Positions 1-21,464 of a stretch of 64,000 bases of DNA are shown in pieces. The notes beneath the pieces are model-generated. The model was given only the letters and a program-made list of their open reading frames with translations, searched no databases and had not been told where the DNA came from. Origin of the DNA: Orbicella franksi (taxonomy: Eukaryota); NCBI GenBank assembly GCA_964199315.1, contig OZ116710.1:2232001-2296000 (forward strand). The letters run 5' to 3'. The stretch's first letter is position 1. Each line of letters opens with the position of its first letter. Both the position numbers and the translations under genes were made by a program.

Positions 1-11
1 CCATTAAAGGT

Positions 12-80
12 CTGTTGTAAGTAAACTACGTGACGGTGAATGTATCGTCGAAAAAAACCTCATCAGGCCTGTCTCAACAG
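12..80 (-). ncRNA. Degenerate type I hammerhead ribozyme motif
   Basis: Minus strand reads CTGTTG-AGAC-AGGC CTGATGA GG(T)7CGAC GATA C..G TA GTTT-ACTTA-CAACAG. The GAAA core is mutated to GATA and stems II/III are imperfect. Confidence 0.35.
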
Positions 81-769
81 TTGATTCCTGATCCGGTCCG
101 CGCAACCGAAGAAACAGATGCGGCCAAAGTTCAAGTTAGCCGAAGTTTACTGGCGTTGAATTTTGGCAGCTGGACAATACAAGTAACAGGCGAATCAGTC
201 TGAAATTATGCTGAAATGAACACTGAAATTTTGTTAAACTTAAATTCTACATTCTACATTCTTAAATTCTACATTCATCGGAGGGTAAACGTGAAGGCAT
301 AAGAAGTATTCTTTGACCTCTGCTCCTTGGAAAACAAATCAACTTGCTCCATACTGTAGCTGGGAGAAATAAACGGGTTTCCCCTAACTAAAATAACAAA
401 AGTGTAGGCAACGTTTAACAACATAAAAAGCGATCTCTGGTGCTATTTTACGTAAACATGACTACGCTCTGGATGAAAAAAATCTTTGCTTTTTTGAAGG
501 GTCACCTGCAGAGCCCCTCACTGAAATGGCATAACAGGTTGGGGCTGGTACTAATCTAATGCCTTTTGAAGTTATAACTAATAACGCGACAGAAAGATAG
601 CTGGACAATATTACGAACGTTACAATGATCACGCTCATGCTAGTGAGCCCGGAAAGGCTGAAATATGTTTGTTGTTCTCAGGTACACTTTTCACCTACTA
701 CGAAGCAAAGATATTTATGCATAATATTAACAACCAAGTTATATTAACAATCAGTTCGTAAAGGAAAGG

Positions 770-1098
770 CCCGGGGACGGAGGAATGCCATATAAAAGGG
801 ACGGGGGTACTTGTCGGAAATTTGGAAAACAAAACCCTACGAGGTACCAAGATCCTGTTTCGTGGGCGTGGCTTGAGATGTTTTTCACCCCTAACAAGTA
901 CCAGATCTAAAATAACACTTTATCTCCTGTCATATATTATTCGGCTCAATACCTTAAAAGATAGCACAAAAGCTCCTGCAGTGGTCCTTTTGGGCTGAGC
1001 ACCTTAACAGGCACCAAAACCGCGCTTTTAACCCCTAAAAGGTATGACGAGCAACCCAGTCCTTTTTATATGGGAGTCCCCCCCCCCCCCCCGGGGGG
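770..1098. mobile_element. Non-autonomous DNA transposon (MITE) with CCCGGGG termini
   Basis: Imperfect TIRs (CCCGGGG..ATATAAAAGGGACGGG / CCCAGTCCTTTTTATATGGGAGTCCC..GGG). It interrupts a block whose paralog at 2735-3060 lacks it. A related fragment lies at ~48830-48950. Confidence 0.75.
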
Positions 1099-1849
1099 AA
1101 GAAAGGTCGCAAAACAAGTCTTTGTGCCGACAAACGGCACCTGGTCACTTATGATATCACAAAATGTCTCCACAAGAGACAGTGTTTATTAATTACATTT
1201 CAATGTTTAAATGGCATTTAGACAAGCTCACTGAGAAATAATCAAGCTGTTCAACAGTGACTGTCATTGTATAGTATGGCAGGAGTTCATTACATATGGA
1301 AGCTCCGGGTGATGGTTAATCTTTTCTACATGGTGTTTGTGCGATCTCCGTTCAAGCTTTTGGGTCTATAAAAGAAAGTCATACCATTCTTTTATACTTC
1401 TACATGATTTTCATGCTCAAAATTTCTTCTTGAATTTCATTCCTCTAAATTTCAAGCTCTCTTGCGCATCCTCTTTGATACACTTCTACTTGACACACGA
1501 GAAAATCAAACAAAGAGGTTAAGCTTGTAACTGACTTTCTATAGCGATTGGAAAAACCTTCAGCACCATTTCGTCAACCTTAAAAATTTCATTAGCTGAA
1601 TATTTATTGAACATTTCCTACCCTCCTTTTTCCCGTCAGTTTTAATGTCACTTCACACGATTTCCTAAGAATAGTAAACATCATTAATTTAGAGGGATTC
1701 CCAAATCGCGATGAAATTAAATCACTACTAAAATAATATACATCATACATATTATACTATGACAGCAAAGATATTCTCAGTTTCAGGCAGCAAAAAGACC
1801 ACCCGGTTGCAAATTGAGCTTAGTCGAGCGTGGTGTAGTATATGTAGTC

Positions 1850-2065
1850 AGTGGTGCATGAAGTGGAATTAGTGATTGTTGTAGTTGTAGGGGAAATGGT
1901 GCAGTTCGTCAGGTATTAGAATTAGTGATAGCTGAAGCTCTATAGTATAAATAGTGTTAGTTAAAGTTTTAGCAGTGTAGTTAGCGGCTTTATTGGTGAA
2001 CTTCGCAGTTGCATTGGAAATGAATCGAGGATAGTCGAAGTTGCAGGGGAAGTGGTCCACGGCAC
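1850..2065 (-). repeat. CA-rich (ACT/ACA) satellite-like repeat, arm next to copy 1
   Basis: Reverse complement resembles the caactgcaccacttcc..caactacaac units at 5440-7090. Confidence 0.6.
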
Positions 2066-2084
2066 CTCCGAAGTTATTGTTGAC

Positions 2085-2672
2085 TTAACTGGATTCAATG
2101 CACTGTATTTTATAATTGCTATTCAAGTTATTGTCCCAAAACTCTTGACCGCCAATGCAATAACGAATCGCAAATTTAATTTCTAGATCGACGGCAGAAT
2201 CCATTGGAACTGTAACACGAAACCAGAACTTATCCGTTTTTCCATCCATGCTTGAGGAGAGATAATCCGCCCAAATATCTCGATAGGACTTCCAGTTATC
2301 TGGCGTGAATCTCACTATCACTTCTTTAGCGAAACCTATGTTAGTTACTCGAATACTTCCAGTAACAACAGAGTAATGGCATACAATGCTTTCGAGGCAA
2401 ACATTCTGACTGTAAACACGTTCGAAGAAAGAGCTTGTTTTATAAGGCTCGGTAAAACTTGGAGACAAGTACTTCCCTAATGGTTGTGGACTTGGCAAAC
2501 TTCGGCTGTAGTTGTTGTTGACGTTCCACAAGTTACTGGTGTAAATGTTAACATAATCTTCTCCACTGTGTGGTGGAATTATTTTTACAAATTCGAGCGT
2601 GAAGCCAGCCGCATCTGCAAAGGAAACTCTCTTCTTGATCTTAGACATACAGATGCTGCTTATTTCATTCAT
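2085..2672 (-). CDS. PPP1R3: Glycogen-targeting PP1 regulatory subunit, copy 1 (195 aa, intronless CDS)
   Basis: KKRVSFADAAGFTL is an RVxF PP1-docking motif. CBM21 motifs: GSIRVTNIGFAKEVIVRFTPDNW, DKFWF, KFAIRY, EFWDNN..NY. First real ATG (MNEISS) is at 2672; the ORF-track start at 2699 is TTG. Symbol is family-level only. Confidence 0.93.
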   Translation of the reverse strand: MNEISSICMSKIKKRVSFADAAGFTLEFVKIIPPHSGEDYVNIYTSNLWNVNNNYSRSLPSPQPLGKYLSPSFTEPYKTSSFFERVYSQNVCLESIVCHYSVVTGSIRVTNIGFAKEVIVRFTPDNWKSYRDIWADYLSSSMDGKTDKFWFRVTVPMDSAVDLEIKFAIRYCIGGQEFWDNNLNSNYKIQCIESS

Positions 2673-3769
2673 CCGCTTTCGCTTGATACGATCCGTCAAG
2701 TGACTTTTGGATAAAGTGAAGCTTTGCGTTTACAATACATCTTTTTGAAGGGTTCACCCACAGAGCCACCGACTCAGCGCCGTGGCGTAACACGTTGGGG
2801 CTGGTACTGAGATACAATGCCTTTTGAACTCATAACTCCCATATAGCTAACACACAACGAGAGTTGTACAAAAATTACGAACGTCGCGACTAACTCATGT
2901 TAGTAAGCCCGAAAGGAGCTAAAATATGTCTGTTACTCTCAGGTGCACGACTCGCTTGCCACGCAGCAAAGATATTTTAAAATGCTGAAAACTAACAACC
3001 AAGAGGTTATCAGTTCATGAAGCAAAGGTCGCAAAACAATTCTTTGTGTTGACAAATCACACTCATCACTTATCACTAATCGCAACAGATCACTTTGAAA
3101 TAGATCTAGTGTATCCTGCAATATAGGAAAGAAGCACACTATTACGAACGATGTTGAAGTCGCATTTAAACAGGCGCAGAAATAATCAGTTTAGTTGTTA
3201 TTATCATATATATTAGGTTAATGTTCTGAAAGGATGTTTGTGATTTCGTTTTAAAAGTCAGAAATATGTTCAATTTCGTGGTGTGCGAACATGCGCATTT
3301 GATACGTTTTAAGTGCATAACAGGAAGTACTCATATCACACTTTTAAGTACTGCCACATGACTCACGATATCGCATTTTCATTGGCAACTGTTCAATTGA
3401 ATGGTTCCAACGTTCAAGCCTTCTCATTTCCATTTCACGGCATCTACTACAGACAACGGAAATTGGCTTTGGTTACCATGTCATCGGCCTTGCCTGTTTT
3501 TACCAGCTTACTTCAGCACCTGAATATGTAATACCCTCCTTCTCCTCCACACCCCACCCCCTCCACTCCGTTTAATGCTTTTTCAGTGAGAGGAAGTAAA
3601 CAAAAATAACAAAAACACAAGATATGGCCTATGTGTAGGCTCTCGTACGTTGCGGTACAAGCAAACAGGTAAGCCGAAGCGGGCCAGGCCCCGACTCGCT
3701 CCCCACGCCGACTCGTCTCTCGCGTCCTCTCCTTCTACGCGTACGGGTCTCCGCAGCCGTTGTTAAACC

Positions 3770-4790
3770 TTGGTAGAGTGGAGTTACATACTGGTAACTT
3801 AGTACACAGAAATAGTGCTAGCAGTTGTAAATGCTAGAGAAGTTTATATATGATGTTAATGAAAGTGGCATTGGAGGAATTTTTTGCATGGGAAAGTAGT
3901 AAAATGAGCTGATACAGTTTCAGCTGTGGAAAAGGGGTGGAACTAGAAAGTCATTGTGTTATTTGTAGAAGTAATAGGAGTTGCTCAAGTTTTGAATTTG
4001 ATCATAGTTGCAAAGACGTTTTAAACTGAGGTAGTGGTAGTGGAATAGTTATAGGGAACGGAGACTTAAAGTTGCCGCAATCTAAAATCAATCAAATCTT
4101 CGAATATCCGTTGGCTACATTCGGGCTATATATAAGTCAGCACGATCCGAAATATCTGACTCTTAACTTGCATGATTCCATTTCAGCCCTTCTTTCTATA
4201 TTGTTGGGACTCAAAATCCTGAATTAATTTTCATAATTACTAAATCTAGGGCTGTCACTTGTTTCACTACCAAAAACCATTTGTTCCATTTCTGCCACTA
4301 ATTCCACTACGGAGCCACCACAGCCAATACAACTAACTATATAACTTACTCCAACTCCACCAAACCAAACATTGTCACTACAACTATCACTTCCTCTCCT
4401 ACAATCAACCTCAACTCTATACCACATTTACTCCATAACTGCCAGAACAAGTCGATGTACCACTATCACCATTATGGCAATTCAATTGTCATCTGACTGC
4501 CATTATGTTCAATTAGCATAGGCACTAATTCCACGGGAACTAGCGCCCTAAATGCCTTTACAACTCAGTAGCGCTATCACTAAATCCACTACCTCTTACT
4601 ACAAGTAGTATAGTAGCAAATCATGAATTAAAGTTGAAGTGACCATTGCGCAGCTACTTCTACTGGAAAACGCACAGGTAGTTGTGTAGTTAATAACAGT
4701 AATGAAACAGTGGCAGCTGTTTGGTCATTGGTAGTTGAATGGCAATTGGGGAAGTTGCAGCAGCAGCAACAGTAGTAGTAGTATCGCAAC
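3770..4790. repeat. CA-rich satellite-like block with internal inversions
   Basis: GT-rich at 3770-4070, CA-rich at 4205-4610, GT-rich at 4610-4790. The 4270-4790 segment is homologous to 6700-7255. Confidence 0.7.
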
Positions 4791-5039
4791 GTTCGAAGAA
4801 AACAATAGTGAAGAGGCTGGTTAGTAGCTAGCGATATGACGTTCTGTCATGCACTATTTCATTGACAACGTAAATCACAAAGAAAATATTCACAGAGCGT
4901 CGTGCTTCAAAAAGAAATTACTTGACGGTATTTGTCTGACAATCATCGTGTCCATAAAAAAGACACTCAGTGACACTCATTTCGTCTGAAGCCGGGAAAG
5001 CCTTCTTAGGGTGTCTTAAGTCACTATTGACATGTTATA

Positions 5040-5410
5040 ACTGTATCGATTTTTTAATTTCAATTCAACTGAAGTTATTCAGTATCCCCAATGCAAGAAC
5101 GAATCGCAAGTTTAATTTTTAAATCGACCGCAAAATCCAATATAAAACCAGAACTTATCGGTTTTTCCATTCATGTATGCTTCACGAGAAACATTCCGCC
5201 CAAATATCTCAATAGGACTCCCAGTTATCTAGCATGAATCTCATCACATCTTAAGCGAGACCCCAGGCTATGTTTGTCACTCGAATGCTTCCAAAAACAA
5301 CAAAGTCATCTCATACAATGCTTTCGAGACAAACATTTTGACTTTAAACACGCTCGAAGAAAGAACTTGCACGATTCGGTAAATCACGGAGACAAGTTCT
5401 TTTTTCTCAG
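5040..5410 (-). pseudogene. PPP1R3: PPP1R3 pseudogene (copy 2), CBM21 part only, 5'-truncated
   Basis: Aligns by eye to copy 3 (8130-8530). Reads NLSP*FTESCK..FFERV*SQNVCLESIV*DDFVVFGSIRVTN..DNWESY*DIWA..GKTDKFWF, with several stops and frameshifts. The N-terminus and RVxF are replaced by CA-rich repeat. Confidence 0.88.
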
Positions 5411-5429
5411 TCTAGAACCAAACCGGAAA

Positions 5430-7255
5430 CGACCACTAACTGTGACACTTCTACAGCAACTACAACCACCAGCATTTCCATTACTACTAACTTAAACTAA
5501 ATCACGTCCACAACAACTACAACTATCACAATTCCATTACAACTAATAACTGCACGATTTTCTCTACAACTACAGCTATCACCAGTTAATTCCACCACCA
5601 CTAACTGCACCACTTCCACAACAACTGCAACTATCAGCAGTTCCACTAACACTAACTTCACCACTTCTACAACAACTACAACTATCACAATTCCACCACC
5701 ACTAACTGCACCACTTCCACAACAACTACAACTATCACAATTCCATTACAACTAATATGACTGCACCATGATCTCCACAACTACAGCTACCACCAGTTAA
5801 TTCCACCACCACTAACTGCACCACTTCCACGACTGCAACTATCAGCAGTTCCACTACCACTAACTTCCCCACTTCTACAACAACTACAACTATCACAATT
5901 CCACCACCACTAACTGCACCACTTCCACAACAACTACAAATAAAATAAATAAAAGACTTTATTTAACCTGAAAGGCCAATCAGTAATCACTGGATCACTG
6001 GTATTAACTGGCGATCAGCATTTACATATAAAATACAGCTATTCATAAAATTGTACTTTAAAAAAAAAAAAAAATCATGAAGATATATATAGTACACGTT
6101 TACATTAAAAATTACAACCATTGTGGAGATTATGTAAAAACAAGCATTTAAAAAGAAGAGCAGCAACAACAAACAGACAAGCAAAAAATTGAACCTAATT
6201 TACGGTACATACATGATTGATACGGTCTTGATCCATAAAATGCTTTAAAATATGTGTTTTAAACTTGGAAAGAGTAATTCCACTACCAGCAATTCCACTA
6301 CCACTAACTACCACTAACTCCACCACTTCTACAACAACTACAACTATCAACCGCATCATCTCCCCTAAAACAAAAACTGTATCACCAATTCCATTACCAC
6401 TAACTACACAATTTCACGACAACTACAGCTATGGGCAAGTCCACTAACTGTACTACTTCCCTTACAACTACAACTAAACTTCACAACAACCACTCTCTGC
6501 ACCACTTCCCGAGCAACTACAAGTATCACTAGTTCTACTGCATCTCCGCAACTAAAACTATCACTGGCTCCTTTACCAGCTGCATCATGGCCACTAAATC
6601 TGCAACCACTTATTCTACTGCCATGCACCAACTCCATCACTGTCAACGGCTACAAATGGAAATAACACCAATTCCACTATCACCAGCTGAGCTTCACCGC
6701 TGGTGATACTGAGTGGATTAGTGGTAGTTCCATTCGTAATGGCAGTGATGGAGTTGGTGCCAATACAACTAACTACATAACTTACTCCACCTCCACCAAC
6801 CCAGTCAGTGTCACTACAGCTATATCTCCTCTTTCCCTACTATCAACTTCTTAACCGACATTGCCCTTACAGCTACCTCAGCCGACAATAATTCCAATAC
6901 CACATTGTTACATAACTGCCAAAATCAAATACATGTACGACGGGCAGCAATAATTCCACTGTCACCTTAACACTGTCATTATATTCAGCTACCACATGCA
7001 GTGGCACAAAGTCCACTGCAACTAACGCCCTGACGTGACCTTTACAACGCAGTAGCGCTGACCACTATGCCACTTACTACAAGTAGTAGAGTTGTGGTAC
7101 AATGGTAATAGTACAGTTAAAGTTGAAGTGACCACTGTGTAGTTACTTCTCAGTACTGGAAAGTGTACAGGTAGTTGCGTGGTTAATAGTAATGAGGCAG
7201 TGTATTTGGTCAGAGGCAGTTGAATGGCAATTGGGGAAGTTGCAGTAGCGGTCGT
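5430..7255. repeat. CA-rich satellite-like block including a 50-bp tandem array at 5512-5940
   Basis: Monomer aacaactacaactatcacaattccaccaccactaactgcaccacttccac; the period is exactly 50 between 5671 and 5721. Interrupted by AT-rich DNA at ~5940-6270; strand switch near 7080. Confidence 0.85.
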
Positions 7256-7451
7256 AATATCTCTTTTAAACATGACCATATTGAATTATTACAGCATTGC
7301 ATAACTCTCGAAGTTGGTTGAATTACTTTATTTTATGTTGTTCATACGATGTTACTGAAAGATAAACTTCCCAGGAAAACGTTCATAATGGACACGAAAA
7401 ACTGGCCGACGGAAGCCGAGCTTCTTGGTAGTTTGTAAAGGAAGATATCTG

Positions 7452-7697
7452 AGGCCCCATTAGGGGTTTTAGGGATACGGGATATTTGCGAAAAAAAATT
7501 ATAGGGATACGGGATATTTCGGGGAAAAATTATAGGGATACGGCATATTTAGAAAAGAAAGGGTGGGATATCGAACGTCAAAGTTTTCTTTTTTGACAGA
7601 ATACAAACTACAGGAATTAATGGGATACGGGATATTTGGGACAAAAATTATTGGGATACGGGATATTCAGATCCCCCCCCCCCCCTTAATGGGGCCT
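7452..7697. mobile_element. MITE with internal GGGATACGGGATATT repeats
   Basis: TIRs AGGCCCCATTA(G)GGGG / CCCCTTAATGGGGCCT and five near-copies of gggatacgggatatt. It lies within an ~650-bp insertion absent from the paralogous flank at 4790. Confidence 0.8.
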
Positions 7698-8128
7698 TGT
7701 ATCTGGTAAACATAATGGCGAAAATCGTATCGATGTCATACTTGTCATTAATATTGCGTGAAATTGTTTTCTTAATCTGTCAAATACGTATTTCGGACAC
7801 TAGAAACAGGAAAGGAAATAAATTTCGTTCTCAATTTGATTTGACTATGAATACCGTGACTAATCTCCCGACAACGTGTCGGTGAAAATCGCAATTCTAT
7901 AGTTACATCGTACGAGAAAAACAATAATGAAGAGGCTGGTTACTAGCTAGCGATGTGACGTGCTGTCATGCACGATTTCATTGACAACGTAAATCACAAA
8001 GAAAATATTCACAGAACACCTTGCTTCAAAAAGAAACTATAGACGGTATTTGTCTCACTATCATCGTGTCCGTAAAAAGGTCACTTAGCCGCATCGGTAT
8101 GACTATATATTTTATATTTCGCTTGAAA

Positions 8129-8719
8129 TTATTGACATGTTTCAATGAATTGTATTTTATAATTTCTATCCAAGTTATTGTCCCAAAACTCTCGGCCGCC
8201 AATGCAATAACGAATCGCAAATTGAATTTCTAGATCAACCGGCGAATCCACTGGAACTGCAATACGAAACCAGAACTTATCCGTTTTTCCATCCATGCTT
8301 GACGAGAAATAATCCGCCCAAATATCTCGATAGGACTTCCAGTTGTCCAGTGTGAATCTCACTGTCAGTTCTTTAGCAAAGCCTATGTTTGTCACTCGAA
8401 TAGTTCCAGCAACAACAAAGTCATCGCATACAATGCTTTCGAGACAAACATTCTGACTGTGAACACGCTCGAAGAAAGAGCTTGTTTTGCACGGCTCGGT
8501 AAAACACGGAGACAAATTCTTTCCTCTCGGTCGTGGACTGGGCAAACTTCTGCTGTTGTTGTTGTTGACGTTCCACACGTTACTAGCACAAATGGTAGCA
8601 TTATCTTCGCCACTGCGTGTGGGAATAGTTTTCACGGATTCGAGCGTGAAGCCAGCCGCATCTGCAAAGGAAACTCTCTTCTTGATCTTGGACATAGAGG
8701 TGCTGCTTATTTCATTCAT
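8129..8719 (-). CDS. PPP1R3: Glycogen-targeting PP1 regulatory subunit, copy 3 (196 aa)
   Basis: KKRVSFADAAGFTL plus an intact CBM21; close paralog of copy 1. Homology with copy 1 starts only ~22 nt upstream of the MNEISS ATG (8719), so the longer 285-aa track ORF is probably not the true start. Confidence 0.93.
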   Translation of the reverse strand: MNEISSTSMSKIKKRVSFADAAGFTLESVKTIPTRSGEDNATICASNVWNVNNNNSRSLPSPRPRGKNLSPCFTEPCKTSSFFERVHSQNVCLESIVCDDFVVAGTIRVTNIGFAKELTVRFTLDNWKSYRDIWADYFSSSMDGKTDKFWFRIAVPVDSPVDLEIQFAIRYCIGGREFWDNNLDRNYKIQFIETCQ

Positions 8720-8880
8720 CCGCTTTCGCTTGATACGATCCTTCCACTGACATTGTGAGTCGGTCTGTCCGTCAGTCAAGATCTTAGCTAGAAATTCGAC
8801 GCCTACGCTTGTTCGCCTCGTTCTTTGTCTGGTGGTGTAAAAGCCGGTATCGCGTTGTTGTCGCTTCGGATTGAAATTGG

Positions 8881-8888
8881 TGACGTCA
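8881..8888. promoter_or_regulatory. CRE palindrome TGACGTCA upstream of PPP1R3 copy 3
   Basis: Perfect 8-mer ~160 nt upstream of the ATG. Confidence 0.55.
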
Positions 8889-11800
8889 TTGCCGGAACGA
8901 CGAACTTGAGCGAAGGCTACACACATATACACATAAAAAAAGTGTGCTACAGAACAGCTATCTTTGCAACCGAGAGAGGCAAACATTTCAGGGATTACGA
9001 ATGCAACACCACATAAACGGCTACAACTCAGCTATTGACCTGATTAATATATCTGGACCCTTCGTCGATTAATATGAGCGCGTTCCGAGTTACCTTTGAG
9101 TTACTATGTCTTCAGCTTCCTCGTACAATTGAACAGATTCAGTGACTTACAGACAGTAATTGTCAATTTAATACAGGCCGCTCTATTCAGTTCTAAGGTT
9201 CTCCGTATGCACCTAGGGCTGTGGAGCAGGTGAACAAGTAAAGAAAAATTTAAACCCTGTTCGACAGACAATGCCAGCAATCGGTTTCAACGGTTTCCAA
9301 AAACGTTAAACAAGGGATTTGAAACCTTGCTGGAAGGTCTCTGAGTTCATATCGCCTCATCAAAAGTATAAATGTTTATATGCACGGAAACATCCTTGTA
9401 TAAAATTAACTGACAGGAGTTGCAACTGATTGATCGATTTTGTGCGAATTTATTGGGAAACAGACTATAAAAATCAGAGGATTACGGTAACACTGTAGGA
9501 AATTTTTGGACTGAAAAAAAAAAAGATAATCTTTTTGGGTTGTTTTGTTGGTGTAATCGACTCTCATCTTTGATAACATGTGAGTGTCAATATAAAAACT
9601 GGCTGAAGATTTCTTACTTAAACTTGTTCCAGATACTTTGATAAGAGCTGAGAGTTCAGAGATGTTCGTTTTGATTTAGCCTCGCTCAATATAAATTCAA
9701 GATGTCAGTTCCTTTTTGCGATTGCTGCAATTTCTTTCAATGCTTCTTAATATAAGTTGTGTGAATATGATGGTTCATAGCAACAATGTATTCCTATTCT
9801 CCTATATCAGTCTTCTCGGGTCTGCTAATAATCCAGAGACAACATGTAAGATCGCTATTTGAAGAGACTGAGTCAGATCAGTGTAGATACTGAAAATCTC
9901 TTCAGTAGAGCACAGAAGTAAAGATATAGCAGTACGTTCATTCTCAGCTGACTTTAATACAGCTTTCGAATTTCTTTGTTAAATTGACCCTACCATAGTT
10001 TCGCATGTGGTATCAGCCTACAGCCAGTAATAAAATGTTCTTTAGAGTGTACGATGAGACGTCATCGTTTTCTTGACAGTACTTTGTTTTCTGATGTAGT
10101 TCTGCATGCGATCACTTGTCTCTCCATTGCTGCCGTTATTCTGGGAAGTTGCTAGTTTTCCCTCGTCACATTTGAAGGTTCATGTTTGTTTTTCTTGTAC
10201 CTTTACTGACAAGTCGTCAGTTGACATTGCTAGTACTGTATTTATTGTGTATTCATTTTGTTTCAATTGCCGCACGTATTCCGACACCGTTTTCATGAGT
10301 CTAAGGACAATTTTTTCATATTTCGAATTGATTGCTTTCTTGCGAAAAAATTGGACGTCGATTGCACTTCGGAAGGGATACTATCTCACACGGTTTTGAC
10401 TCGGCTATCAAAGGCTTGGTCGCTTCATGGTCGTTCGTGACGAAACCACGTGGAACGATCGATATAATAGAGAAAGCAAACCACAACGGTAACGGCACCA
10501 AACAATAGGCTTAATGAGTACGGCAATGGCTGTGCACGTGCGTTAGCAACCTTTGTACCTTTCCTCTGGAAAACAATAACGTGAAATGACTAAGTTCTGC
10601 GTATTTTGGAGAACGCAAAGGATGGTGGCGAACTTTTTGTCGTCTTATTTGGAATTGAATGCTGGCGTTACATATTTAGCTTGAGCTTGTTCTGAGACCA
10701 CTAGGCACGCTGAACAGATCTAGACAATTGCGAAATTCGAAGGTAAAATTAAATTCATTTTTTTTACCAGGCGTTGTCCCTGGGGTCTCCGTCATCAATG
10801 CTTAAGCTCTCTACTAATTCCACTTGTACCGCGAGAAATTTTTACGTTGCATTAATTATATTGGCTGCCGGATCTTTGCTGTTCTACGCTTAATTTCACG
10901 GTATAACAAATATTCCTGTTTTCTACATTTATGACTCATGGAGCATAATAAAGTGTAATCAAAAGTGGCTAATGAGTTGGAATTTTATTTTAACTCTAAA
11001 AAGATATTAACTGGCTATTTATCCAAGCCTATGCAGTTTTTCCTGTTCGGTCTGCAAGGCCAAGTATCACAGTATTTGGCTCCAACTAATTAAATTTAAG
11101 AAAACCAAATGACATAATTCATCGATTACAATTTACATGCATTTCCATAAGTTGTTTTCTGAGTCGGATCTGTGATTATAATCCTTGAGTACATTGTCTT
11201 GCCTGACCAACGTTTTTAGTCTCTATTTCTTGTCATCGACATACTGTAGGACCTATGGTTTGGTTTTAATACTCGTTTAAAAAACTGAGAAGATCAAACC
11301 CCCGGGATAATTTTTTTCCAGCCAGCAGTTTTTTTCTGCTAAACAAAAACATTAAGAAAATGTTTTAGCGAGGCAACAGATGTTACATAATAGCTAAGTT
11401 GTTCGTTTACAATTCCACACGGAAGGTCGGTGTTGAGGATAGTTGCACCAAATTTTTCTCCTAGATGTTGTTTTCAATTGCCTTGTGTTCAACGAAGCAT
11501 GTTCTACTAATTATAGTGGAACCCGGTCCAAGATGACGAACCTCAGGGGAAAAAATGTAAAAAAGCCACCAAATTGTCCGCGCTCTCTTCAGTTATTTTA
11601 AAACGCATAGACTGACTTGTCACGTAACTCCGCAAAGCGAAAACATCAACCCACAGACGTTTGGCATCATGACAAATTCGTTATATCTGGGCTGCTCCAT
11701 TTTCTCTTGATATTGGCATTCCTTTTTACGGTTTCGTGTAAATGCAAGGCAAAGAAAACAGTTAATAGTGAAATTTTAAATTTCACAATCATTTCAATAT

Positions 11801-11891
11801 ATTTGTACTCATCGAGGTTTGGTCAAATTCGCTCGCACGAAGATTACCATCTTTCCTCAGTTCAGTTTGTTCTGTTTCTGTAACGATGTTT

Positions 11892-12497
11892 CTATAATTG
11901 TTCAGGAAAGACTTCTAAACACTGAATATGATAATTTTTTCTGTCATTATTGTCCCAAAATTCTTGGTCGGAGGCGCGATAACAAATTGCAAACTCCATG
12001 TGTCGATTTACTTCAAAGTCATGAGGTACAGTGACACGAAAGCTAAACTTGTCTGTTTTTCCATCCGTACAAGAGGACATATAATCAGCCCAAATGTCCC
12101 GATACGTTGCCCAGCCGTTGAATGTGAATCTCACCGTAACCTCTTTAATGAAAGATAAATTTGTCACTCGAATAAGCCCAGTGACAACAAAGTTTTCGCA
12201 CGCAATGTTCTCCAAGCAGACATTCTGGCTGTAAACTCGCTTCATAAAATTGTCTGTTTGTTCTGCAGGTCGAACGAAGCACGGGAACAGACATTTTATC
12301 CGTCTCCTTGGCAAATTTTCGTTGATATCACAATGACTTTTCCTCGCACCGATCGCGGAGCATAGGTTGTCATCGCTGCTACATGGAGTAATGATTTTAA
12401 CGAATTCAAGCTTGAGTCCAACCAGGTCCGCAAAGCAAACTTTTTTCGTCGCGGAGGTTGGACTGGGTAGCCCAGAGCCTTGTCCGTCCGCCTTCAT
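11892..12497 (-). CDS. PPP1R3: Glycogen-targeting PP1 regulatory subunit, copy 4 (201 aa)
   Basis: KKVCFADLVGLKL (RVxF variant). CBM21: GLIRVTNLSFIKEVTVRFTFNGW, DKFSF, EFAICY, FWDNNDRKNY. Confidence 0.93.
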   Translation of the reverse strand: MKADGQGSGLPSPTSATKKVCFADLVGLKLEFVKIITPCSSDDNLCSAIGARKSHCDINENLPRRRIKCLFPCFVRPAEQTDNFMKRVYSQNVCLENIACENFVVTGLIRVTNLSFIKEVTVRFTFNGWATYRDIWADYMSSCTDGKTDKFSFRVTVPHDFEVNRHMEFAICYRASDQEFWDNNDRKNYHIQCLEVFPEQL

Positions 12498-12565
12498 TGC
12501 TGTGCAACTCTCGGACGATTAGTTCTCTAATAGGTGATGCTGTTGTTCGGGCGAATTCCGACAGA

Positions 12566-13251
12566 TGACGTCAGCTTCGGAACCTAAGATTGAAGGTGGA
12601 ACGAAATTTTCCACCATAAACGACTTATATTCTTGCTAGCACACTCCATAAAAAGAAATTGATGTTTTTTTTTAAAGTGGGAACCAGTTGTTTTTCATTG
12701 CTTCTATATAATTTTAACCAGCCAGAGCGAAACAAGAATTGACAACCAGAGCAATGTTTATCCAGGGAGCTCGCCGAAGTAGTTTTGAGCAGAGCTCAGT
12801 AAAGTCACAATAATACGAGATTTTTAAAAGAAAATTGAAAAATTGTTACTTACGGTTATCCCAAAGCTTTCCTTTCACTTTTAAAACAATTGAGACAACA
12901 TTCCCCAGATCATGGAAAGCAAATGTTCTCCGGACAGGCATTGGCACACTTTGCGGCACGTGCGAGAAATGAATCGGGTTTTATAACCATGGTTTGGAGG
13001 TCAACAGTGACGTCAGTAAAAAAAAACGTGTCATAAGTCATGGAGATGGAAACAACTGCGGGAAAGGAATGTAATGGAACTTCGATGCTTCCACCTAATT
13101 TCCTTTCATGTGAACACCCGCTATAGTCGAAGCAGTCGCATCTAACAATTCGTTAACTTTCGTGGAGAAAAAGTTAAATTATATGAAAAAAAGCAATGTC
13201 CATATATGCAAATTTTAATTCAGTTTCAAACAGCGACAATATGTGACGTCA
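12566..13251. promoter_or_regulatory. Three CRE palindromes upstream of PPP1R3 copy 4
   Basis: TGACGTCA at 12566-12573, 13008-13015 and 13244-13251. Confidence 0.6.
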
Positions 13252-14830
13252 CACCTTGAATCGTGCGTGAGCAAGCGTCGCGCGCTGACCGTGAAATATC
13301 TCGAACAAAATATTTTTAGAAGCCTTTTCTAGCTTAAAGTTCAAGTTCACCACTCTTTGAAATATACTCAGGCGTGACACTGTTGGACATCTAGCGGAAT
13401 TGAATCAATGATCTGAATGTTGTAGGGTTTGATTTGGGACGCAACACCATCGTGAGCATTAGCTGTTATTTTCGTCGTTGACCGGAAGAAGATGTCTCTC
13501 TTAATGGAAACATCAAAGGTAATATCAAAAGAGTGCCGATGAGAAAACTGACAGCCTTCAGGCCTTGTTTTTCAAGTTTATTTTTTATTGACATTTTTTT
13601 CTCGCGCGAAACTTTCCGCCTTAAAACTGTATTGGACCACCACTGTCTACACTGAAACACTAATCAAGTTGCCTGGTTGGTGAACAATGCGTGCTGTTCG
13701 GTATTATTCTTTTCTCAGAAGTCATCAGTTACCAAACTGAAGTTCCATATATATTCTAAAAACCCTTGCTCGTAAAATTTTGGTGGTTTGCACCACTAAA
13801 ACGTCGAACGTGAAGAAGGTATCTGTAGCAAAGTAAAGCTTAGTTGTGTTGACCCATCACTTTCAGTCTTGACATAAGAACATCAATACCAACTAATGAA
13901 TTTACATACATGTAATTTCACTGTCATTTCAAATGTAAATCTACTTGAATATTATACGTATATCTTACCTGCGCCGGAAATCGTGCCTGTTCGCAGACTA
14001 AATACATTATATTACATGAAGGGAGACTTCTCACGTGAGGGGCGCGGTACGGGCGATCGCGAGGATGGTGAATCCCGCCTCTGACTGGTGACTTCCCCCT
14101 TAAATAATTGGTTGAAATGACGTTGTTTTAACCACAAAACAGAATGTTTCGCGACAATCTGATGTCCTGAAATTCAATAAAATATGATTCCGACTGAAGC
14201 CGTAAAATTGGAAGGTAAACAGTACAACATCACTTATGCAGTAAATCATGCACGAAACGGTCGTTACTAGTTGATACAATCGACATCTTAACTCTAGTCC
14301 TAGGCAACAAAAACATGTTTTATTTCAGGGTTTCCCTGGAAAATTTCTCTAGCAACTTGCGTGGCAGCAGAATTATAAGTTGCACAGGTATGAAACTAAG
14401 TATAAGATATATACTTCCAGAACTCTCAAAATTCAAGCATTTACTCGATGTTTCCATGGCGACTGTCTGTCCATCCAAATTTGGAGGCTTCTTACTTAAT
14501 TTTCTTAGTTAAATTAACAAAATTTTTAAAACTTTCATGGAGTTGCTTCTAAACTGTTAAGACTTTTTACCACTGTTTTTGGTTTTAATTCGTTTTTAAT
14601 GGTTTTATGGAATCATGAAATTCAGGATAACGCATCCAAGTGGTTGGCTGTTTGGACACCATTAGGTGACTAATCATACTATATGCAACTTACTAGCACT
14701 GCGAAGCAGTTTTATACATTGAGTTTCTTTATCATGTTATTATAATTGAAATTACAAGCGAGGACAGTCCCCCCTCCCCTTAGTAGAAAGAGATGTCTTC
14801 TCGCCTGAAGGAAGCATCAGTTATTATCCA

Positions 14831-14972
14831 AGGAAGCGGTAGAGCACTCAAGAAGTAGGGAAAAACACTCGACTACGTCTCGTGTTTTCCCCTACACTTC
14901 TTTCGTGCTCTACCGCTTCCTGCGTGCTTTACAACAGAACAGAGCACAGTCGAGGCTTCTTTATTTGTTAAA
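14831..14972. repeat. Short hairpin-forming interspersed repeat
   Basis: AGGAAGCGGTAGAGCAC (14831-14847) pairs with GTGCTCTACCGCTTCCT (14905-14921), with further internal pairing. Confidence 0.65.
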
Positions 14973-15659
14973 CTGTTTTTGAGTGCCACGATTTGAACAC
15001 GTGTATTCTTCAAGATTTGACAGTTTTTGACACTGATTGTGATGTCCATATTTATTTAATTTTCAATTCTAAATTTCTAATCTGTACAACAAAGGCGATT
15101 TCCGAGTTCGTTGAATTGTACTGTTAGAATATGTCTTATCTTCTTTGTTTCAACTAAATGTTTAATACCACGAATTTCGAAAAATATTCTCTAACATATA
15201 AATTTACATTTCATATAAATAACTGATTGATATCTTTAAGGGAATATGATTTTGTGTTCGCTTTTAGCATAAATTAAACACTAACTCAAAAGTTCGTGAA
15301 TACCGTAAAATAATGTAGTTATTTTAAGGAAATATCGTCCTTTATATACTTTGCGGAGAGAAACAGCCAATTTCCCTCTCTCTTCAGAAACGTCTTGAGA
15401 CAACGAATACGGAAATACAACAAGTGTATTCTTGGTAACAGACTAATTTCAGAGGTGAATTATGTTGACCTGAAATTATGGTAGATATGTACCTGACAAC
15501 TCTTTGCACAAATAATATTTGGAGTTGTAGACTCTAGCTACTTTGCTTGCAAACACAAAATCCTTCCTATAGCTCTGAACGGTTTGTTGCTCAAAATGAC
15601 AACAAGGAGAACTCGACGTGGACTACTCAGTTAATATATGCACAGCAAGGTCAGGCAAA

Positions 15660-16265
15660 TTATTTATCGACGATGGTGTGAAGAAAACATTCCGCACAAT
15701 AATTTCGCTTAAAATTGTTGTCCCAGTATTCTTTTCCTGCCGTACAATATCGAATGGCGAACTCAAGCTTTCCCCCAACATCCAAGTCTTGAGGAATCGA
15801 AATTCTGAACTGAAATCTGTCGGTTTGACCATCCGATGATTTCGGCACATAGTCTGCCCACACATCACGATAGCTGTGCCATCCGTCCACCGTATATCTC
15901 GCTGTTACTTCTTTAGCGAAGGCAATGTTTTTTACTTTTACAGTCCCAACCATCGCAAAGCCACAGAAAACAACGTTCTCCAGACACACATTTCGCTCAA
16001 TCACGCGATCAATAAACTTTTCTTCGGACGCAGGTTGGGTGAAGCAACAACTCATTCGTTTTAGGTGAATCGGCGTTGAAATATGGCTTAAAATATCCAA
16101 CTTTTTATCAAGCGATAGGTCCTCCTCGCTGTTTGCCGGCGTGATCATTTTCACTGACACCAAATCCTGGCCGTCAAAGTCTGCAAAGTGAACTCGCCGT
16201 TTCGAATCCAAACTCGTTGGCGAGTGTAGCGGCGAGTTCGCCGTATTCTCCTGTTGTTCTTTCAT
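15660..16265 (-). CDS. PPP1R3: Glycogen-targeting PP1 regulatory subunit, copy 5 (201 aa from first in-frame ATG)
   Basis: RRVHFADFDGQDL. CBM21: GTVKVKNIAFAKEVTARYTVDGW, DRFQF, EFAIRY, YWDNNFKRNY. The track start at 16346 is TTG; the first in-frame ATG is 16265 (MKEQQE). Confidence 0.92.
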   Translation of the reverse strand: MKEQQENTANSPLHSPTSLDSKRRVHFADFDGQDLVSVKMITPANSEEDLSLDKKLDILSHISTPIHLKRMSCCFTQPASEEKFIDRVIERNVCLENVVFCGFAMVGTVKVKNIAFAKEVTARYTVDGWHSYRDVWADYVPKSSDGQTDRFQFRISIPQDLDVGGKLEFAIRYCTAGKEYWDNNFKRNYCAECFLHTIVDK

Positions 16266-16478
16266 TACCTTCACTGATACATTTCCCCCCAAACAAGGAA
16301 AGCAAACGTTATTATTGGAATCCAGGACTAGTTTAAGCGTGAACAACCCGTTGATCGTTACATTATGTCATGGCGGCTTTTGACTGCCGCTCCTGTACGC
16401 TAGCATATTTACATTCTTCCTCCGCAGTGTCCGTGACTTAGTGCATGTATGACTGAATCGAATCTCTTTCAGAAAGCG

Positions 16479-16486
16479 TGACGTCA
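16479..16486. promoter_or_regulatory. CRE palindrome upstream of PPP1R3 copy 5
   Basis: TGACGTCA ~215 nt upstream of the ATG, plus a TACGTCA half-site near 16529. Confidence 0.55.
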
Positions 16487-19400
16487 TTTGCATGTTTATG
16501 AGGGATCCCGTCAAGACTGTCCATCACTTACGTCAACAACCCAAGAAACCACAAAACCACAAAGCGATACTGTCCAGAATTCACATTCACTGTGCAGAGA
16601 AGATAAGTTGTACTCTCATTTGACCGAGCAAAGAAAAACTGGAAGTTCTAAATATATCTTTTGAGTGTAGAAGTCAACGGAATATTGATTTAACTTTTTG
16701 TTATCGAGTTATCAAATCTGTTTCTCTCAGACGTCTATGAAATGTCGGACCATTTCCTTTTACGGGATCGAGAACAATTATCTGAGAAGAAAATGTCAAT
16801 TTTTGTTGATGGAAGATTCACCTTAGCAGAAGTGTCCGCATGAGTTCCACTTCCGGTCCTTTCCTTCCCTCTAGATGACTACTAGATGGCGTGTTTACTG
16901 TGGCATCCAAATCAGGAGGAAAAAATAGACTCATTGGTTAATAAAGGTGATAATAGTTTATTTACAGCACAAAAGTGAAAGCTACTTACATAACCTTCAG
17001 CATTTGTCTGTAGAGAACCTCTCTCCCTTGAGGATCGTACACTGTATGTTAATTTTCAGATTATTATAATAAATATGCTTAAAATATACTTCAAGGACTT
17101 CATACAGAGTGGACTGAGCATACCGGCAGATTTGTCTGCTTTCAAATTATGTGTGTGTTCACAGGATATGTATTTAAGTGCAACAATGTGCCTGTAATAA
17201 TTAAGAGTGGGTTTTACTAAATTATGCTTGCTTGATGTGATGCTACACTGTTTCAGTTCAGCAGGGCTCATAATTTCTATTTCACACAGAAGGAAAGGTG
17301 AAGCCCTTACTATCCCTATTAAGAAAATATTTGAAGGCAGGAATCACAAAAGAAAAAGAAACCAATCAACTTTCAGGAGAAGCAATGCATTGCAACCTGC
17401 ACCACCAGCAAATAATAATTATCAAGTGCTTGGATTAACAGAGCTAATCAGAAAGCTAGGGGTAAATATGAAGGACAAGTCAAAAACAAAAAGCGGAGAA
17501 ACATTGTCGCATGTGAATCAGGGGATCAAGTAATTAAAACCAAATGATTTGCAAGTTATACTCAGTGTTTTCAAGCCAGTCATCCAGGATTATACACTCA
17601 AGAAACTGGAACAAATAACAATGTTATTTTCTTTTAATTTTTTAATTTTAATTTTTGTGTTTTTGTCACTGAAAAACACCAAATAAAATCACTGTGATAC
17701 CATGTTACTGTATATCTTTTCATATTTTGCATGTCCAGTTGCCATTATAAAATAATGCAAAATTTTGACTATTGTTGATTTCCATTGCATTATACTCATA
17801 ACTGTACAACCATATATTTCCTCAATTAAATACACATCTCCCATAAGTGCCCCTCCATAACCAGCTGGGCTCAGTTAAACTTCTAGCTAAAGTCCATGTC
17901 TCTCAGCCCTAAAAACCACTAAGAAGGTGGATAATCCACATGTGATAAAATGTTATTGTCCAACATCAAACATGATTTACGGTCAAAACCAGCCAAGAGT
18001 AACTCCAAAATTATAACCACATAAAAAATAATTTAATAAACATATTTTGATTTTCGTTCTTTATTTAACACTATTCTAATTCCATTCCAAGGTGAAGTTT
18101 TCATTGTGCAATTAAACTTAAAATTTAAATGTTGATTAGGATAATGTCTGTTTTCAACAGCCATGTGAGAATGTTTAGGGATTTTAAAAGGTCAAGAACA
18201 GTTTTTTGCCAAGTTTCTGTTCTCTATTTATCATTTTGACCCCCTTGAACTCAGTTGAAAAACATGCCTCACATCTATTTTTGTAATAAAAATAGTGTGA
18301 AAGTCAAAACAACAATACTGCATATACTTTTTAGAAGAGCTTAGCAGTGCAAATTTGGAGTAAGTTCTTAGGTATCATTTAAATCAATATTGAATGACTC
18401 CATTCATACAGTGTAATCAACAATATTGCAATGCAGATTGAAGCCAAATTTGTTAACATATTCATTACATTATATGTTATTGAGAGGAATTATACTTGAC
18501 TGGTTTTGACTTTAACCATGAAACATGGAAAGTGACAATTAGTAGAAAGAGCTGAAGTGCTTCAATTGAATAATACCAATAAGGTGTTTAATCCAAATAG
18601 GTTCAGATTGTTCGCTTTAAATTTTAGAAGTTCAAAGTATCAATGCTTCTCATTCAACCATCAAAACAATGATGGTCTAAGACAAGTTTCTCCGTTTCTA
18701 AACCATCATTGACAGTGTAGAACAGTCTGTTCAATGATAAAGAAAAATTCATGCAAGAGCAATGTAAATCTGGTGCATGATGATTAAAATAGAGACATGG
18801 TTTGAAGTCTAGTCAAACGACTATGCTCTTGTCTAGCCAACAGTTCTTTTTCAATGTACCATAAATGCCGGCAGATAAGCTGCACCTAATTACTCAATAT
18901 TTTCTCAACAAATTTAGGATGTGGCCAATGTCTGGGAGAACATCTGGACAGCGTGACATAAATTTGCATAAATTAATGCTTTCCATTGAAACTAAGTCTG
19001 TATGGCAAACTAAAAAGAACTTCATCACACTATACCAGAGTACGCATTGATCATTGTGTAAATTGTAAGTTTGGTGGCTTACATGGGTTTACATTCCATG
19101 AATCAACGAAATATGTAAGCTTATACATGTAACACATCTTTCTTAAGACTCCACTTCTGATTTATTTTGATATCTTTTAAAAATCCTTTTTTCCAAAATT
19201 TGCGTTCCCAAACTCAGGGTGCAGCTTGTCTACAAGTACGGCTTATCCACCAGGGTTTATGGTAATTACGTTGTGGTTGAGTGAGTTCATCAGCCATACA
19301 TTTTTTAAGCAATGTTTTGAAATGTCAAGCAAAGAATCCAAACCAAGCTGAAGCTAAAACTTACTCTTAATTTGACTGTAATACCTACTATGCAGCGCTG

Positions 19401-20624: not shown

Positions 20625-21464
20625 TTACCGTGTACAGTTAAAAAGGTTTGCCATTCGATTGAAACCACCGTTCGAAGCAGGAGCCTCTCGACACTCGATG
20701 CGATAGTTCTGACTGCTGTTATTGTCCCAAAACTCCATACCTTCACCCCGAAAGCGAACTGCAAACTCCAATACTCCTCCGGAAGCGAGAAAATATTCTG
20801 GAAGTGTTAGCGCAAACGAAAATCTGTCCGTTGCACCATCGTTTGATTCAGGCACATAAACCGCTTGCAAATCACAAGATGAAATCCAGGCATCTAATGT
20901 GTACCTCACACAGACGCTTTTATGAAAGCAAATGTTTTTAACCTTTATCGTTCCCCAGATAGAGTTTTGCGAAGCCACAGCGTTTTCCAGACACACAGTC
21001 TGAATCTCTAGTTTGTCTCTGAAGTCTTCCGAAGCAACCGGTTGTGCGAAACATACATGTAATGTCTTCTTCGCTCGCTGGAGCTCCCTTTTGGTCATTT
21101 GTAATGCCACGTGTATGTTATATTCATCATCACTGTAAACAGAAACAAGCGGCTTCCCGCAGCCATCCGCAAACTGCACGGATTTTTTCCTCGGTGCAGG
21201 AAGCGAGTGATGCTTGCGAAGAATAGAATGGCAGCCGTTTTCACCATCATTGCCATCCAATTCATCGTCTTCTGAAAACGGAGGGAACACCGAATTCACT
21301 CTTCTCAGATGGGGCCAATCGACCATGTTGACACAGCGACTTTCGCTGCTATCACAATCAATTCCGTTGCTCATTTCCACCGCTCCCGTCGCTAGATGAT
21401 TTTGTTCAACTCCGCATCGCGCCGGCGGTGGAAATAAAACGAGCGCTGAACGCAGGGCACGCAT
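20625..21464 (-). CDS. PPP1R3: Glycogen-targeting PP1 regulatory subunit, copy 6 (279 aa, most canonical)
   Basis: SILRK (SILK-like) followed by RKKSVQFADGCGKPL. CBM21: GTIKVKNICFHKSVCVRYTLDAW, DRFSF, EFAVRF, FWDNNSSQNY. Longest N-terminus of the array. Confidence 0.94.
   Translation of the reverse strand: MRALRSALVLFPPPARCGVEQNHLATGAVEMSNGIDCDSSESRCVNMVDWPHLRRVNSVFPPFSEDDELDGNDGENGCHSILRKHHSLPAPRKKSVQFADGCGKPLVSVYSDDEYNIHVALQMTKRELQRAKKTLHVCFAQPVASEDFRDKLEIQTVCLENAVASQNSIWGTIKVKNICFHKSVCVRYTLDAWISSCDLQAVYVPESNDGATDRFSFALTLPEYFLASGGVLEFAVRFRGEGMEFWDNNSSQNYRIECREAPASNGGFNRMANLFNCTR

Follow-up and report, generated by a model that had tools for sequence, protein, structure and literature searches.

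The window analysed here, a 64-kb stretch of Orbicella franksi DNA, carries a tandem array of PPP1R3 genes together with five copies of the palindrome TGACGTCA, the full cyclic AMP (cAMP) response element (CRE), which are placed upstream of the ATGs of copies 3, 4 and 5 of the array. The PPP1R3 genes of the array lie on the minus strand and have a single coding exon (Table 1). Their products belong to the same family as mammalian Ppp1r3c (PTG), a glycogen-targeting subunit of protein phosphatase 1 (PP1) that combines an RVxF motif with a CBM21 domain. Each of the five intact copies matches the CBM21 domain (PF03370, Pfam CBM_21) with 97-106 bits, and the N-terminal, RVxF-type PP1-docking motif reads KRVSF in copies 1 and 3, KKVCF in copy 4, RRVHF in copy 5 and KKSVQFAD in copy 6. 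The homologs are scleractinian, including an Oculina patagonica protein that is 82% identical to copy 4. The genome has ten CBM21 matches in total, four of which are on other contigs (C4, C2 and a pair on C15).

An exact-match search over the full length of the window recovered TGACGTCA five times, at 8881, 12566, 13008, 13244 and 16479. An earlier, sequence-only reading of this stretch had listed five perfect CREs at these positions, had noticed none elsewhere by eye and had placed one site roughly 70-215 nucleotides (nt) from each of the three ATGs. The search agrees on the positions and finds no sixth copy in the 64 kb, and the measured distances are 162 nt (copy 3), 69 nt (copy 4) and 214 nt (copy 5). 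Dinucleotide-preserving shuffles of the 64 kb contain a mean of 0.68 copies, and 0 of 100 reach five. For the 7.6-kb interval that holds the sites, composition predicts 0.14 copies under a local order-1 Markov model and 0.08 when scaled from the shuffles. The figure of ~0.1 in the sequence-only reading is therefore sound as a composition estimate but about 4-fold too low against the real density of the motif in the genome: the assembly (497 Mb, 805 contigs) has 29,629 copies, one per 16.8 kb, a density that predicts 0.45 copies for the 7.6-kb interval (Poisson P(≥5) = 1.1e-4) and 3.8 for the whole 64 kb. Under a uniform model, ~36 five-site clusters are expected across the genome. The motif is also 2.3 times commoner genome-wide than its own CpG-free reversal. 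Given this genome-wide excess, and the clustering described below, the five-site cluster alone is less remarkable; it is the position of the sites and their conservation that carry the argument.

The number and position of the sites are kept in related corals. The loci compared include no complex-clade coral. In L001, a syntenic array from a related coral with proteins 86-93% identical, all five CREs are exact and have the same 1 + 3 + 1 layout. Four of the five are exact in another related coral, L008, in which the copy-3 position reads TGACATCA, and in Oculina patagonica (L002), in which the middle copy-4 site (13008) is degenerate, TGACCTCG. Identical 8-mers make up 6.1% of the aligned upstream regions of the window and Oculina and 20% of those of the window and L001, giving binomial P values for the conserved CREs of 6.5e-5 (Oculina, four of five) and 3.2e-4 (L001, five of five). 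Site 8881 is exact in L001, Oculina, L009, L010 and L013; 12566 in L001, L008, Oculina and the C4 paralog (L025/L011); 13008 in L001 and L008; 13244 in L001, L008, Oculina and L010; and 16479 in five of five members of the copy-5 clade (the window, L001, L008, Oculina and L020). L011, from Orbicella faveolata (GCA_002042975.1), matches contig C4 of the O. franksi genome itself at 99.0% identity across 3.3 kb; it comes from the same or a sibling species and is counted as a paralog only. The ATG-proximal CREs are kept in the more distant loci L009, L010 and L020 (59-73% protein identity).

Aligned with these loci, the upstream regions have diverged except for short conserved blocks, each with the CRE as its unchanging centre. 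In a six-locus alignment of copy 3, the only long invariant block is ATGAC(G/A)TCAC at site 8881. The sequence-only reading proposed that cAMP/CREB or ATF stress induction of these paralogs was retained through their divergence. Retention of the sites is borne out, with four to five of five kept while the flanks diverge, and so is the description of the upstream DNA of the paralogs as not alignable: local alignments of the flanks of the five sites within the window score no higher than shuffles. The exception is ~50 nt of clear homology around the CRE shared by copy 4 and the C4 paralog. An origin of the sites in a repeat or transposon was considered and rejected, because the five flanks are unique and their local alignments are no better than those of shuffles.

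Position relative to the genes was compared across the family by placing 27 coral PPP1R3 proteins in a maximum-likelihood tree and recording which of their genes have an exact CRE no more than 300 nt from the ATG. Such a site is found in 17 of the 27 genes: all five of the copy-5 clade, six of eight in the copy-3 clade, four of four in copy 4 proper and neither of the two in the copy-6 clade. Within the copy-3 clade, the site is missing from copy 1, in which the upstream DNA has been replaced, and from the L008 gene with its CpG-transition variant. The base rate in this genome was taken from single-coding-exon control genes, 23 Ras-type GTPases and 29 rhodopsin-type G protein-coupled receptors, of which two and none, respectively, have an exact CRE at this distance. 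The pooled control rate of 2/52 compares with 4/10 for the CBM21 genes of this genome (Fisher one-sided P = 0.005). When the 800 nt upstream of each of the three genes are pooled, the commonest 8-mer is TGACGTCA itself.

The remaining CBM21 genes provide a contrast within the family. The C4 paralog has a CRE at -110, whereas the C2 paralog and the C15 pair have none. Copy 1 is 81% identical to copy 3 at the protein level and has no counterpart in L001 or Oculina; the homology of its upstream DNA to that of copy 3 (2673-3355 versus 8720-9400) stops ~30-45 nt before the ATG, which indicates that copy 1 lost the CRE-bearing 5′ region. A seventh array copy (L029), at G000:C13:2230539-2230844, lies ~1.2 kb to the left of the window and has no CRE in the 1.2 kb upstream of it.

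Transcript anatomy was read over 11001-17000 from poly(A) raw reads (runs X23 and X24) and contigs. In copy 4, a 5′ untranslated region (5′UTR) intron is supported by 46 spliced reads in X24 and three in X23, and its donor, GTAAGT, is conserved; exon 2 starts at 12583. RNA depth at the 5′ end of copy 4 is present in 12801-13000 and absent from 13001-13200, a boundary that, together with the TATAAAA box, places the putative start near 12955. In copy 5, the depth drops ~30-fold from bin 16201-16400 to bin 16401-16600, and with the TAAATAT box and the initiator (Inr)-like CAGTC this would put site 16479 at about -95. Three sites (13008, 13244 and 16479) are thus less than 300 nt upstream of the predicted starts, with TATA or TATA-like boxes. 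No TATA box is evident downstream of the CRE in copy 3. An open frame of 285 amino acids (aa) that extends copy 3 to 8986, and would place site 8881 in the coding sequence (CDS), was rejected because indels in Oculina break the frame; the annotated Oculina copy-3 protein begins at the proximal ATG.

Table 1. PPP1R3 genes, CREs and promoter features of the window.
Feature	Position	Strand	Description
PPP1R3 copy 1	2085-2672	-	intact; no CRE; recent duplicate of copy 3
Copy 2	5027-5413	-	frame-shifted CBM21 pseudogene fragment; no CRE
PPP1R3 copy 3 CDS	8129-8719	-	196 aa; RVxF motif KRVSF; CBM21
CRE 8881	8881-8888	palindrome	162 nt upstream of copy-3 ATG (8719)
PPP1R3 copy 4 CDS	11892-12497	-	201 aa; KKVCF; CBM21
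CRE 12566	12566-12573	palindrome	69 nt upstream of copy-4 ATG (12497); transcribed, begins 10 nt into 5′UTR exon 2
Copy-4 5′UTR intron	12584-12853	-	GT..AG, 270 nt; joint 12581/12852 (cut +2)
Copy-4 non-coding exon 1	12854-12955	-	5′ end approximate, predicted
TATAAAA box, copy 4	12979-12985	-	
CRE 13008	13008-13015	palindrome	511 nt from copy-4 ATG; ~-55 from predicted start, 22 nt upstream of TATAAAA
CRE 13244	13244-13251	palindrome	747 nt from copy-4 ATG; ~-290 from predicted start; ATTTGCAT octamer (13206-13213) ~30 nt later
PPP1R3 copy 5 CDS	15660-16265	-	201 aa; RRVHF; CBM21
TATA-like TAAATAT, copy 5	16405-16411	-	conserved; Inr-like CAGTC near 16385
CRE 16479	16479-16486	palindrome	214 nt from copy-5 ATG (16265); ~-95 from predicted start; adjoins ATGCAAAT octamer
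PPP1R3 copy 6	20625-21464	-	intact, divergent clade; no CRE upstream here or in Oculina

The RNA depth also differs between samples. Over 11801-12600, copy 4 has a depth of ~2 in X23 and ~57 in X24, a 28-fold difference between two samples of one study, whereas over 15601-16400 copy 5 has ~31 and ~32; in a further run, X21, copy 5 is present and copy 4 is absent. This pattern suggests that copy 4 is strongly regulated, and a 28-fold difference in copy 4 with copy 5 equal fits an inducible gene. The CpG observed/expected ratio is ~1.0-1.1 across 8001-16000, compared with 0.22-0.47 in 40001-48000. The high ratio is consistent with a regulated domain that is free of methylation and leaves sites with a CpG open to binding, and the CpG-containing CREs of the array are probably unmethylated. 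The contrast between the two regions looks like mosaic methylation of gene bodies, in which the PPP1R3 array would belong to an unmethylated part.

Factors that could use the sites are encoded in the genome. A CREB kinase-inducible domain (KID) exon gives a pKID match of 36 bits and contains ILSRRPSYR, with the RRPSY site for protein kinase A (PKA), and CRTC gives a TORC_N match of 62 bits. In canonical CREB/CRTC promoters, a full TGACGTCA is found near the start with a TATA box downstream of it. The putative coral promoters resemble this arrangement in that the full TGACGTCA is conserved, has a CpG context that is apparently unmethylated and, at three sites, is less than ~300 bp upstream of the predicted start, and in that the CRE is followed downstream by a TATA box (copy 4) or a TATA-like box (copy 5). 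They differ from it in that one coral site is in a 5′UTR exon.

Mammalian Ppp1r3c provides the closest precedent at the level of the gene. In astrocytes, its transcription rises with vasoactive intestinal peptide (VIP), noradrenaline or cAMP, and dominant-negative A-CREB attenuates the response (PMC11297295); in adipocytes, it is a primary target of PKA (PMC12824187); and activation of the PTG promoter by cAMP is reported in PMC9775135, with reference to Cheng et al. 2006. The cAMP effect in hepatoma cells runs via FoxA2, and mouse adipocytes dispense with CREB. The coral system differs in that full palindromic CREs are present at some paralogs of a tandem array and not at others, and it is known from sequence and RNA depth. 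The likeness between cnidarian and mammalian PPP1R3 genes is one of gene family, not of established cis-element orthology. A second likeness is to another cnidarian, Hydra, in which promoters that respond to a signal and are bound by Jun, Fos, CREB or ATF have the CRE as their hallmark (PMC8049744); there, the targets belong to the Wnt pathway, the stimulus is injury and the evidence is based on the assay for transposase-accessible chromatin with sequencing (ATAC-seq), whereas the coral reading comes from sequence and RNA.

Together, these observations point to selected sites for basic leucine zipper (bZIP) dimers that would give signal-dependent transcription, most likely dependent on cAMP/PKA, to copies 3-5, an explanation to which we assign a probability of about 0.6. 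That the five palindromes are functional CRE-type sites of the CREB/ATF bZIP family is highly probable. That CREB/CRTC downstream of cAMP/PKA is the main input falls a little short of an even chance. The CRE-plus-TATA layout, the encoded factors, the way copy-4 expression varies and the example of mammalian Ppp1r3c make use by cAMP/PKA the most likely. In the proposed mechanism, CRE-type bZIP dimers would bind the five palindromes, which would be maintained by selection; CREB, which is encoded with an RRPSY site for PKA, would act together with CRTC at the CREs of copies 3-5; and transcription of these copies would become signal-dependent, most likely on cAMP/PKA. Synthesis of glycogen-targeting subunits, and hence glycogen storage, would then follow cellular cAMP, while copies 1 and 6, which have no sites, would escape this control.

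Several observations weigh against this explanation. The 29,629 genomic copies of TGACGTCA are 5.2 times the 5,657 copies of a composition-matched, CpG-containing palindrome, TGTCGACA; a motif so widely used in this genome does not imply inducibility by its presence alone. The sites are also over-clustered: in a 1.09-Mb genome sample, two runs of four within 7.6 kb were observed compared with 0.32 expected, so that dozens or more clusters such as this one should exist genome-wide. The starts of copies 4 and 5 are predicted from 200-nt depth bins and TATA positions. Metatranscriptome contigs of copy 3 (JGI, Logan; L004-L007 and L016) follow the genome sequence without splicing, and they run through 8881; L004-L007 share a 3′ end near 7690. 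The CREs had been described as upstream of the genes, which is true of all five with respect to the ATG; site 12566, however, is transcribed, within exon 2 and past the transcription start, and hence is not upstream of the start of copy 4. The CpG transition to TGACATCA has removed the exact site both in copy 3 of L008 and in a copy-4-like gene of L010. Finally, PKA induces Ppp1r3c in mouse adipocytes with no need for CREB (PMC12824187), which cautions against naming the factor.

A reading in which the cluster is accidental, or simply follows from repeats or a locally CpG-rich composition, could be argued from the 3.8 sites per 64 kb and the ~36 or more five-site clusters expected at genome density. 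It could also be argued from clusters elsewhere in the genome that are in duplicated segments, as seen for two identical pairs 7.2 kb apart at G000:C1:2765263-2772670 (L017). It is already contradicted by conservation, since four to five of the five sites are conserved compared with 6-20% of 8-mers, and the local Markov expectation of 0.14 and the unique flanks also speak against it; almost no weight is left to it. Alternatively, the ATG-proximal sites (12566 and perhaps 8881) could act in RNA, as a 5′UTR or splice-acceptor-adjacent element in place of a DNA-binding site. Site 12566 is indeed transcribed, starting 10 nt past the exon-2 acceptor, and the conserved block takes in this acceptor and the adjoining TTCCGAAG. 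The invariant core, however, is exactly the 8-bp DNA palindrome, both flanks vary, and the same 8-mer is found at three untranscribed positions nearby. We know of no RNA role for TGACGTCA, and an action in RNA is very improbable.

If the sites are bound as DNA, what remains to be weighed is the signal, if any, to which they respond. As generic, constitutively occupied promoter elements, they would set basal transcription with no response to a signal. The abundance of TGACGTCA relative to its matched palindrome, the clustering of sites genome-wide and the two of 23 Ras-type genes with a CRE within 300 nt of the ATG all fit such a role, but the pooled controls (2/52) fall well below the CBM21 genes (4/10), the array includes CRE-less paralogs, and copy 4 combines three sites and a TATA box with very variable expression. 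We therefore regard constitutive occupancy as improbable. A signal other than cAMP is the other possibility: driven by stress or injury, through mitogen-activated protein kinase (MAPK) to ATF2/Jun/Fos or through ATF4-type factors, the paralogs would be stress-induced glycogen regulators. Jun, Fos, CREB and ATF all bind the full palindrome; injury in Hydra raises accessibility most strongly at the CRE motif (PMC8049744); CREB, ATF-2 and ATF-4 are up-regulated in coral stress studies that are cited in PMC3587883. The 28-fold variation of copy 4 between samples could also reflect stress. All five sites, on the other hand, are 8-bp CREs and not 7-bp TPA response elements (TREs), and CREB with its PKA site and CRTC are both encoded. 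The layout of copy 4, a CRE plus a TATA box, is the classic cAMP-inducible arrangement. These features do not decide between the two inputs, and a stress input is judged unlikely, though it keeps a real share of the probability.

The preferred reading, cAMP/PKA-dependent transcription of copies 3-5, would connect two features of coral physiology. Coral cAMP is higher by day and cycles with light (PMC3587883). Corals store photosynthate as glycogen, which is a main sink for what the symbionts fix (PMC4337570). A bolder extension, which we consider doubtful, is that cnidarians and mammals share an ancient link from cAMP/CREB to PPP1R3 and that in symbiotic corals this link couples daytime cAMP to the storage of symbiont glucose as glycogen. 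Under such a link, daytime cAMP could come from soluble adenylyl cyclase sensing photosynthesis-driven pH and bicarbonate, and copies 3, 4 and 5 and the C4 paralog would form a light- or feeding-responsive arm, with copies 1 and 6 and the C15 pair as a constitutive arm. A literature search on coral PPP1R3 expression returned nothing relevant. That the gene family is cAMP-responsive in mammals is already known; what is added here is the presence of conserved CREs in putative coral PPP1R3 promoters. From the conserved sites follows a specific cis-regulatory hypothesis, open to test, that links coral cAMP to glycogen storage of photosynthate, and the array is a natural control set, with paralogs that have and lack CREs, including a recent duplicate (copy 1) minus its CRE-bearing promoter. 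In other respects this is ordinary promoter annotation: CREs occur widely, and mammalian PPP1R3C is well known to be induced by cAMP.

Additional motifs are found near the CREs. The sequence TTCCGAAG (12575-12582) is directly upstream of the copy-4 exon-2 CRE in the window and in its orthologs, and in Oculina, L009 and L010 it follows the copy-3-type CRE on the downstream side; the two motifs may work as partners. A common paralogous context for the copy-3 and copy-4 exon-2 sites (GTTCCG-N4-CRE, with TTCCGAAG nearby) was considered and has no statistical support within the window. Other conserved motifs are present in these putative promoters, among them a CACGTG E-box at the predicted start of copy 4 (12957-12962) that is kept in three species. 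Octamers of the ATTTGCAT type are also counted at the copy-5 CRE, which one abuts at 16486-16493. A TGACGTAA variant is at 16528-16535. The ETS motif CCGGAAGT and an inverted partner (16849-16856) are ~370 nt upstream of the copy-5 CRE.

The RNA reads show two further features of the array. Four X24 reads splice the exon-1 donor of copy 4 (12853) to an acceptor at ~1663 on the minus strand, where ttcttag ends the intron and gaaatcgtg follows; this acceptor is past the stop codon of copy 1, and an AATAAA follows it after ~60 nt. The product, a rare chimera formed by read-through, covers 11 kb of the array. A short repeated element at 14831-14972, between copies 4 and 5, is covered by RNA very highly and polymorphically, with inverted-strand joints and numerous loose ends; it is probably a widely expressed fragment resembling a miniature inverted-repeat transposable element (MITE) or another transposable element. 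Outside the array, the GC-rich (52-54%) right end of the window contains, on the minus strand at 60776-63030, open reading frames of 331 and 421 aa that resemble the endonuclease and reverse transcriptase of a long interspersed nuclear element (LINE).

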